Below the pieces are notes generated by a model. The model ran no database searches. It was not told the DNA's origin and saw nothing but the letters and a program-made list of their open reading frames with translations. 64,000 nt of DNA. It comes from Tetramitus jugosus (Eukaryota; Protista; Heterolobosea). Shown here piece after piece: positions 40,473 to 42,371 of the stretch. A program made the translations under genes and the position numbers. Every line of letters begins with the position of its first letter. Position 1 is the stretch's first letter. Where the stretch lies: NCBI GenBank assembly GCA_937625935.1, contig OW569349.1, forward strand, positions 124,001 to 188,000, in the 5' to 3' direction.

Positions 40473-41256
40473 TTTTTTTTCCATACAACGTTTGTTGCCA
40501 CTTTATTCTATACACTACTTACTGTGAGTCATGATTCCACTCGTCACCGTCTGAGCAGTGTTTCACTCCTCTGCGCGACAGAGTTAATACATATCTTGTA
40601 TAGTGCCTTGATGCACGACCTCTTGATTGAGTCAATGACTCCTTATCTTTTGCTCTGCTTCTCTGCTCTTCTTACCAGAGAGCTTCATTTCGTCCAGGAG
40701 TTCCTCCTAGAAATCTCCTTCATTTTCCATCAGTCCCTCCAGCGTACCTTCAGGTGTTCGCTTAACATTTCGTGGTTGTATCTTTCCACTCACATACAAA
40801 ACATCCTCGAACCATATAGGGGCCTTGACAGAGTCTGGCAGACTCAACTTGTCCAGCTTCACCTTCAGCTCTTCAACCAACTTGCTTCTTGCAATTCTTG
40901 CGAGTTCGCACTCCACGAGTAGATGCACAATGGTTTCTGGAGCTTTGCAACAGTGTGTGCAAGTGACATCGAACAGAGGATTGTACAACTGTCGAACGAC
41001 AGTCCGTGTGTGGAGAGTTCCACTTCTCACCTGATGATAGAACCAAAGTCTTTCTAGACCAAATGGGCGCTTGAGAAAGTTATTCCTCTCCTTATCTTGC
41101 TGCAATGCAACCTCATGTTTTGAGATAGTATCACTCCTACTCATTGAGAAGTGATCAGCCAGTTCCTTCCTGACGTTATCCTCAACAAGCCCTCTACCAC
41201 TTACAGACACTGAGACCTTTTGCTGCACGGTTCTCCGAGCCACATTTCATCACATC
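40473..41256 (-). mobile_element. 5'-truncated non-LTR retrotransposon, copy A, 41 bp upstream of tRNA-Asp
   Basis: zf-RVT-type CTHC..ETIVHLLVEC; AATAAA..GCAAC..TTGTAT then A8 (T run 40473-40480); exact 12-bp TSD GATATTGCTCGA at 40461-40472 and 41257-41268. Confidence 0.92.
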
Positions 41257-41297
41257 GATATTGCTCGAGAAATTGAAGTTTTCGATGATAACAACGA

Positions 41298-42371
41298 TCG
41301 GGCATGGTATAGCTGTTGTAGTCACCCCAAAAATCCAGTATCGGCACCCCTAAAAATTATCGACACACCGGGGAAAATTTTATCGGAACTTCATCAAAAA
41401 CCAATACAACAAACAACAAAACAACAACAATTCAACCCATCATACACTTGATAATCATGTGAAAATGATGATTTGTTGGCAACTCATTCTGGCTTCTGGT
41501 TGAGCAAAAAATCGGAGAAACAGGTGTGAGTGGAGTTTACAACCTAAAGCACTGTTTTGATATGGATATCGTCCCTCGACTCGATCATCATTATCAAGGG
41601 GCTCCAAGTAATGATGACAGACAATTGTCTGTCAAGATCATTGTTTTTTTTGTCCAGAGAGTTGGTTGGAAATTTTGCATAGGTCAAAGTATGAGAAAGT
41701 GCGTAGCGCCATTTACTAATCAAGTCGTTTCTTGTGTCTCCCTGTAATCGGTGGAACTGTAGGTCAGCGAGCCACCAAAGCGGCAAAAGTTGGGTTACAA
41801 AGATTGATGGGCGAGATACCTCAACGATTTTGGGAAAACACAGCCCGAATGAAAAGAGCAACCAAAGGTCATTTTTCCTCTAATTCTCTAATGGTATAAT
41901 GTCCTGCATGGTAGAAGAGCGTACGTCTGTTTTTCAATCAGAAGGGTAGCAGCCTAGAGTTGCTACACACTCATCCTTCATCTTGGAAGCAGTAGGGAAC
42001 GCCTAGGAGGAAGTAAGTCGGGCAGGATTCGAGCTTTGCGGTAGCTACTGTGCGAAGGATCATACATCCCTCCGCCAAGACATACTGTTATACGATGTAG
42101 TTATCCTGCAATCAAGCAAAACAGACTGTTCATTTTGTTCATATTTTGAAGAGGTCAAATTGATTGCACTCATAAGATCGACGAGGGAGTTTTATTGAGA
42201 GTTCCCATCGGCTGAACAGAATTCAAACTGATTAGAATTCTCTAATACAATGTTTTTTGGTTGTATTGATCGAGGTGTGCCTATAATATTTGAAGGAGGT
42301 GTCGATAACAGATAGGGGTAGCATTCCAGACTGTCACTCTGGCGACCCGGGTTCGATTCCCGGTGCTCGAG
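41298..42371 (+). pseudogene. tRNA-Asp(GTC) gene split by an insertion (5' part 41298-41313, 3' part 42317-42371)
   Basis: Acceptor TCGGGCA(41298) pairs 7/7 (one G-U) with TGCTCGA(42364). Anticodon arm CCAGA-CTGTCAC-TCTGG, T arm CCGGG-TTCGATT-CCCGG, TTTT terminator at 42375. Rejoined length 71 nt, with one A-C mismatch in the D stem. Confidence 0.9.
41314..42310. mobile_element. 997-bp non-autonomous DNA-transposon-like element with TGT..ACA termini inserted in the tRNA-Asp A-box
   Basis: 37-bp imperfect TIRs (23/37 identical, ungapped), repeated TATCGRCAC-like motifs at both ends, and an imperfect 6-bp TSD TATAGC/GATAGG. No intact ORF. Confidence 0.8.

Follow-up and report, generated by a model that had tools for sequence, protein, structure and literature searches.

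A non-autonomous inverted-repeat element at one base of the tRNA-Asp(GTC) A-box: evidence for probable site-specific insertion

The window analysed in this work is a 64,000-nucleotide stretch of contig C6 from a eukaryotic assembly of 26.35 Mb in 56 contigs, and all genome-wide searches were run against this assembly. The window contains a tRNA-Asp(GTC) gene that is split into pieces of 15 and 56 nt (Table 1). The 56-nt 3' piece comprises the remainder of the D-loop, the anticodon arm with the anticodon GTC, the T arm with the B-box, and the 3' strand of the acceptor stem. When joined, the two pieces match base for base the 24 intact tRNA-Asp(GTC) genes that were found by genome-wide pattern search, and the acceptor stem of the rejoined tRNA consists of seven pairs, one of which is G-U. 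This bears out the original prediction that a piece located at 41298 completes the tRNA and restores a full 7-bp acceptor stem. In the genome-wide pattern searches the 3' part of the gene was detected 27 times and the 5' part in 26 credible copies; 24 intact and two split tRNA-Asp(GTC) genes are present in the genome.

The surroundings of the split gene were inspected as well. On the reverse strand, positions 40707-41243 of the window are occupied by an ORF of 178 aa with a weak match to zf-RVT, representing the tail of a non-LTR retrotransposon. The end of this reverse-transcriptase tail lies about 55 bp 5' of the split tRNA gene, in the manner of dictyostelid TRE5, and an RCC1-like gene is located downstream. 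Comparison of the 10 bases 5' of each tRNA-Asp gene (41287-41297 in the window) revealed the motif AACA, often as TAACAACA or TAACAACGA, immediately before base 1 in 13 of the 24 intact genes; it is a possible Pol III signal. A slight resemblance to this motif is seen in the right end of the inserted element described below (GATAACAG). A first-look Rfam search returned about 1600 tRNA candidates in 26 Mb (a rough count), which suggests a very large tRNA gene complement; this would make tRNA genes a safe target. Contigs C54 and C56, both AT-rich, yielded identical matches at identical coordinates in the pattern and tRNA searches, and they probably represent one organelle genome that the assembly contains in duplicate.

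The tRNA-Asp gene in the window is interrupted between bases 15 and 16, that is, in the D-loop and inside the A-box. In all 24 intact paralogs the sequence GGTATAG is directly followed by GGGTAGC, and hence neither the C at 41313 nor the G at 42311 is a tRNA base. As these two bases are foreign, the repeated target is ATAG, and the intervening element has a length of 999 bp with the ends CTGTT..AACAG. The intact paralogs limit the target duplication to 4 bp at most. Comparison with them, which had been proposed as a check, thus both matched the upstream piece exactly and fixed the duplication as ATAG. The insertion postulated in the original prediction is real, but the element is not the 997-bp TGT..ACA sequence described there, as its ends lie one base further out on each side; the imperfect 6-bp duplication NATAGN that had been proposed does not exist.

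Table 1. Features of the split tRNA-Asp(GTC) gene and of the inserted element (positions refer to the window).
Feature	Position	Strand	Basis or remark
5' piece of tRNA-Asp(GTC), bases 1-15, G5 subtype	41298..41312	+	Shared without change by 12 intact G5:C68 paralogs
Left ATAG of the target duplication (tRNA bases 12-15)	41309..41312	+	Single ATAG in intact genes, one per side in split genes
Non-autonomous TIR element, 999 bp, ends CTGTT..AACAG	41313..42311	+	Missing from 24 intact paralogs
Left terminal inverted repeat	41313..41350	+	Inverted match to the right end
Three TATCGRCAC-type sites: 41339-41347, 41358-41366, 41381-41389 (offsets 27, 46, 69)	41339..41389	+	
Right terminal inverted repeat	42274..42311	-	Inverted match to the left end
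Two inverted TATCGRCAC-type sites: 42299-42307, 42277-42285	42277..42307	-	Offsets 5 and 27 from the right end
tRNA look-alike: last 10 bases of the element, ATAG and 3' piece	42302..42371	+	ARAGORN, 70-nt tRNA-Asp(GTC)
Right ATAG of the target duplication	42312..42315	+	Single ATAG in intact genes
3' piece of tRNA-Asp(GTC), bases 16-71, C68 subtype	42316..42371	+	No mismatch to intact paralogs

With the ends of the element set independently by the paralogs, the two termini proved to be inverted repeats of each other, with identity at 10 of the first 13 and at 24 of the first 38 bases. In a control with 200,000 random pairs of sequence windows at the same spacing, the fractions reaching these values were 2e-4 and 5e-6, respectively. 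Inverted ends beyond chance, which had been noted before as imperfect repeats of 37 bp, are thereby upheld, except that they are shifted by one base and extend over 38 bp. Both ends carry sites of the type TATCGRCAC (Table 1), and the left end has a fourth, weaker one at offset 5. Offsets 5 and 27 are common to both ends, with the sites in inverted orientation. A close pair of such sites occurs only here and in the second copy of the element (see below) in the entire genome. Paired ends with phased internal sites, if these are bound as we presume, is the anatomy of a transposase substrate. Sub-terminal repeat arrays are also present in EnSpm/CACTA elements but are not specific to them; assignment to this group was rejected given ends that are not CACTA, a duplication of 4 bp rather than 3 bp, and the lack of relatives.

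ORF lists were made for the element, and a comparison between its two copies revealed no ORF that is open in both. Pfam searches with E values up to 10 yielded no match to the element, and an Rfam search detected neither a family nor an intron. The element is therefore classified as non-autonomous.

A genome-wide search with the whole element resulted in exactly one other match, at C42:364306-365303. The copy on C42 is 998 bp long and shows 54 differences that are spread along its length (32 transitions, one gap), corresponding to 5.4% divergence. It interrupts a different tRNA-Asp gene at the same base, in the same orientation and with ATAG on both sides. In an alignment of the two loci, similarity extends from tRNA base 1 to base 71 (the discriminator) while the flanks are unrelated, which rules out a segmental duplication. 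The search for other copies that had been called for thus turned up only this one, and together with the paralogs it agrees with the earlier view of a non-autonomous mobile element inserted in a tRNA A-box. Bases 5 and 68 distinguish the two host genes, forming G5:C68 in the window and T5:A68 on C42. Since each of these subtypes is common to 12 intact tRNA-Asp genes, the hosts were different genes before insertion. For a randomly landing element, the chance of a second insertion into one of ~26 such sites in 2 x 26 Mb is ~5e-7 by arithmetic.

A possible trace of another insertion was found in a tRNA-Asp gene at C48:241719 (about 1490-1557 of C48:240219-243267), which has a score of 39.3 bits in the Rfam tRNA search and an A instead of a G as discriminator. 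It reads TCGGGCA-GATAG-GGGT, i.e., bases 8-15 are replaced by GATAG. The G in front of ATAG is absent from intact genes and equals the last base of the element. An occupied allele is converted to this sequence by a single deletion that has the CA dinucleotides of the acceptor strand and of the element end as its breakpoints, whereas two separate ones are needed to derive it from an intact gene. For this reason it is read as the scar left by a third insertion, which either was excised with resection or disappeared in a later deletion. The presumed targeting of tRNA-Asp, which a single insertion could not establish, is now supported by the second copy and this apparent scar. A solitary 16-mer with the sequence of the left junction, namely 15 tRNA bases and the first C of the element, is located at C8:231910-231925, in a spacer of roughly 160 bp between a cofilin gene and an alpha-galactosidase gene, and no 3' half is present within 10 kb. 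It may be the left-junction relic of a fourth insertion; as about 0.1 chance matches of a 15-mer are expected, it is not counted as evidence. An orphan 5' tRNA-Asp piece of 19 nt (through GGGGT) at C35:453595-453613, followed by unrelated DNA near the contig end, is unrelated to the 999-bp element and was rejected as a relic of it.

Judged by the sequences, independent and site-specific insertion is the best explanation for the two copies, and we consider it a likely one. The alternative is that one chance insertion in a tRNA-Asp gene was followed by gene conversion or ectopic recombination that copied the element to a paralog, without participation of a target-specific enzyme. The tRNA-Asp genes are nearly identical and apparently kept alike, some exchange among them probably occurs, and the genome contains only two copies of the element, all of which would be compatible with such an event. 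However, the homology available on the left side amounts to 15 bp only, and the recipient kept its own bases 5 and 68, so that the left tract would have to end within 10 bp of the insertion. Moreover, copying leaves unexplained the first insertion in a tRNA gene, the C48 scar and the 5.4% divergence. We therefore regard this explanation as unlikely. The tRNA halves of both split genes show no changes in about 140 nt, where ~3.8 would be expected under neutrality (P about 0.02). In view of the 5.4% divergence of the copies, this suggests that the two copies had split before the insertions took place. It fits copies that diverged elsewhere and moved later into their present sites, as cut-and-paste elements do. 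The argument is weak or fails if gene conversion still homogenises the split halves.

At the right junction, the tRNA predicted by ARAGORN takes TCGATAA from the element end (Table 1). The last 10 bases of the element plus ATAG are alike with the first 15 tRNA bases at 10 of 15 positions, with one gap. In the Rfam tRNA search (cut-off 29 bits) this look-alike scored 27.1 bits in the window and 32.3 bits in the C42 copy, compared with 52.8 bits for an intact gene. Six of the seven acceptor pairs form in the C42 look-alike; that in the window is devoid of U8. The likeness may be an accident of the TCGA core in the putative binding site. Alternatively, the element end and the target may be read alike, by analogy with what has been proposed for Dada sub-terminal repeats (PMC3706591).

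The look-alike also bears on a further explanation, in which a tyrosine or serine recombinase performs a crossover within an ATAG core common to the joined element ends and the tRNA gene, ATAG then not being a duplication. The same four bases are present in all events, and the right end together with ATAG resembles the beginning of the tRNA, particularly in the C42 copy. Integrative elements are known to enter bacterial tRNA genes via site-specific recombinases, and repeated arm-type sites are also a feature of recombinase att sites such as lambda attP. Against this, the tRNA DNA around the core, as read from its sequence, has no inverted arms like those of the element ends, the rebuilt tRNA is poor in the window copy (low score, no U8), and inverted ends of 38 bp with matching site offsets represent the usual anatomy of DDE transposons. 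A crossover of this kind seems quite improbable to us. Yet, with all insertions at one site, ATAG might not be a true target duplication but belong to the element or serve as a recombination core.

Even less probable is an origin from an LTR retrotransposon with tRNA genes as targets, of which a solo LTR would be left. This would account for the length of ~1 kb, for TG..CA near the ends and for the 4-bp flanking repeat, as LTR elements are flanked by duplications of 3-6 bp (PMC10045372). However, TG..CA is situated one base inside each end and not exactly at the terminus, inverted site arrays at both ends are not an LTR feature, and the genome contains neither a full-length element nor any other LTR copy, both copies being solitary. 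It is barely conceivable that the insert represents a giant tRNA intron, with splicing of the transcript keeping the gene functional: both halves of the gene are undamaged and a pair in the acceptor stem co-varies when the two split genes are compared, but (i) each stem variant is found in 12 intact genes, so that the co-variation is inherited and not selected; (ii) 24 of 26 genes are without the element; (iii) the position is 15/16 and not 37/38; (iv) direct reading of the element shows several internal T runs, which stop Pol III; (v) there is no match to group I or group II introns or to any other Rfam family; (vi) the folded 1074-nt precursor displays no bulge-helix-bulge at the junctions. 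Two other candidates were discarded, namely a spliceosomal GT..AG intron, whose removal would leave 6 extra bases, and retroposition of a Pol III transcript, which the several internal T runs make unlikely.

Further copies or an autonomous partner of the element were searched for genome-wide using (i) the whole element; (ii) each end (80-90 bp); and (iii) the pair of TATCGRCAC sites. Only the two copies described above were retrieved. Terminal 13- and 17-mers with mismatches did not match the genome above the level of reversed-pattern controls. No transposase gene and no autonomous relative were found in the genome, including the partner with a DDE integrase that the original prediction had proposed to look for. 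Words from the junctions or TIRs had 0 matches in two scans of metagenomes and one of viral sequences, and a lookup of occupied or empty alleles in other assemblies via the neighbouring RCC1-like protein returned no record.

Few eukaryotic DNA transposons are strictly target-specific, and Dada has been described as the exceptional case (PMC3706591, PMC8869645). It is the one superfamily of DNA transposons for which targeting of small RNA genes has been described (Kojima and Jurka 2013, PMC3706591; Kojima 2022, PMC8869645). Like Dada, whose insertions occupy a constant position within multicopy small RNA genes, the element described here is found at the same base of two tRNA-Asp genes and in the putative scar. 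Dada targets include tRNA genes, the A-box is a favoured region and tRNA-Asp is one of the hosts; internally deleted derivatives use the same site, and sequence near the element end can resemble the target (PMC3706591, PMC8869645). There are, however, clear differences. Dada elements have no TIRs but only short sub-terminal ones (PMC3706591), in contrast to the 38-bp inverted ends found here, and they generate duplications of 6-7 bp as compared with at most 4 bp (PMC3706591, PMC8869645). The Dada lineages found in the A-box duplicate tRNA bases 8-13, not bases 12-15, and the lineage specific for tRNA-Asp resides in the anticodon arm, not in the D-loop (PMC3706591, PMC8869645). No host from the Amoebozoa is reported for Dada in these two studies (PMC3706591, PMC8869645).

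The integrase-type DNA transposons of the Ginger2/TDD group include Tdd-4 and Tdd-5 from the amoebozoan host Dictyostelium (Bao et al. 2010, PMC2836005). Their termini read TGTNR (PMC2836005), and the element has TGTTG and TGTTA, each starting at the second base. Likenesses are duplications of 4-5 bp (PMC2836005; lengths also in PMC10045372) and a preference for RTATAY-like targets (PMC2836005), to be compared with the duplicated ATAG and the target GTATAG of the element. By contrast, TIRs listed for this group are 50-300 bp long (PMC2836005) and thus longer than those of the element. Ginger2/TDD transposons are not known to be gene-specific, unlike the element, which was found in tRNA-Asp only, and no integrase-like gene of this type was detected in the genome. 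Judged by its TIRs and the length of its duplication, the element would thus be placed outside Dada, and it appears to fit Ginger2/TDD only loosely. An affinity to IS481/Ginger/Tn7-type elements, as suggested in the original prediction, may exist, but TGT..ACA is situated one base inside the ends set by the paralogs, and the searches yielded no transposase.

The dictyostelid elements TRE5, TRE3 and DGLT-A are retroelements that integrate at fixed distances outside tRNA genes and leave these genes intact. They share with the element the use of tRNA genes for safe integration into a compact amoeba genome. They differ from it in that they are retroelements inserting outside the gene, whereas the TIR element lands inside a tRNA gene and destroys it.

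Overall, the element is in our view probably a non-autonomous TIR DNA transposon with a specific target, the position between bases 15 and 16 of tRNA-Asp(GTC) genes, where its insertion duplicates ATAG. A trans-acting transposase that is now missing from the assembly would bind to the TATCGRCAC sites and pair the element ends, which would then be joined to staggered cuts made 4 bp apart in the D-arm of the tRNA-Asp DNA. Movement would proceed by cut-and-paste and leave scars such as that on C48. The host would tolerate the element because 24 intact tRNA-Asp genes remain. As every event found affects tRNA-Asp, recognition of the target by sequence is favoured over recognition of bound Pol III factors. 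A more far-reaching interpretation, which we put forward tentatively and consider rather doubtful, is that the element is the first trace of an undescribed tRNA-specific TIR lineage in amoeba, the transposase of which, possibly of the integrase-like TDD type, would use one and the same domain to read the 5' part of tRNA-Asp and to bind the TATCGRCAC sites of its own ends.

The two ends with their mapped putative binding sites and the 71-bp target constitute a small, defined substrate that can be used in the search for the enzyme. This substrate would also be suited to work on the recognition of tRNA genes by transposases, within the limit set by a total of two copies. The element strikes a gene of which 24 spare copies exist, a habit that among DNA transposons has been described almost only in Dada, a group that looks unrelated. 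A second element of different structure, with inverted ends and a 4-bp duplication, that is specific for a single base of one tRNA species would mean that this safe-haven strategy has more than one origin. If the interpretation as an undescribed lineage is correct, not only retroelements but also DNA transposons would have evolved precise homing to tRNA genes in compact amoeba genomes, independently of Dada.
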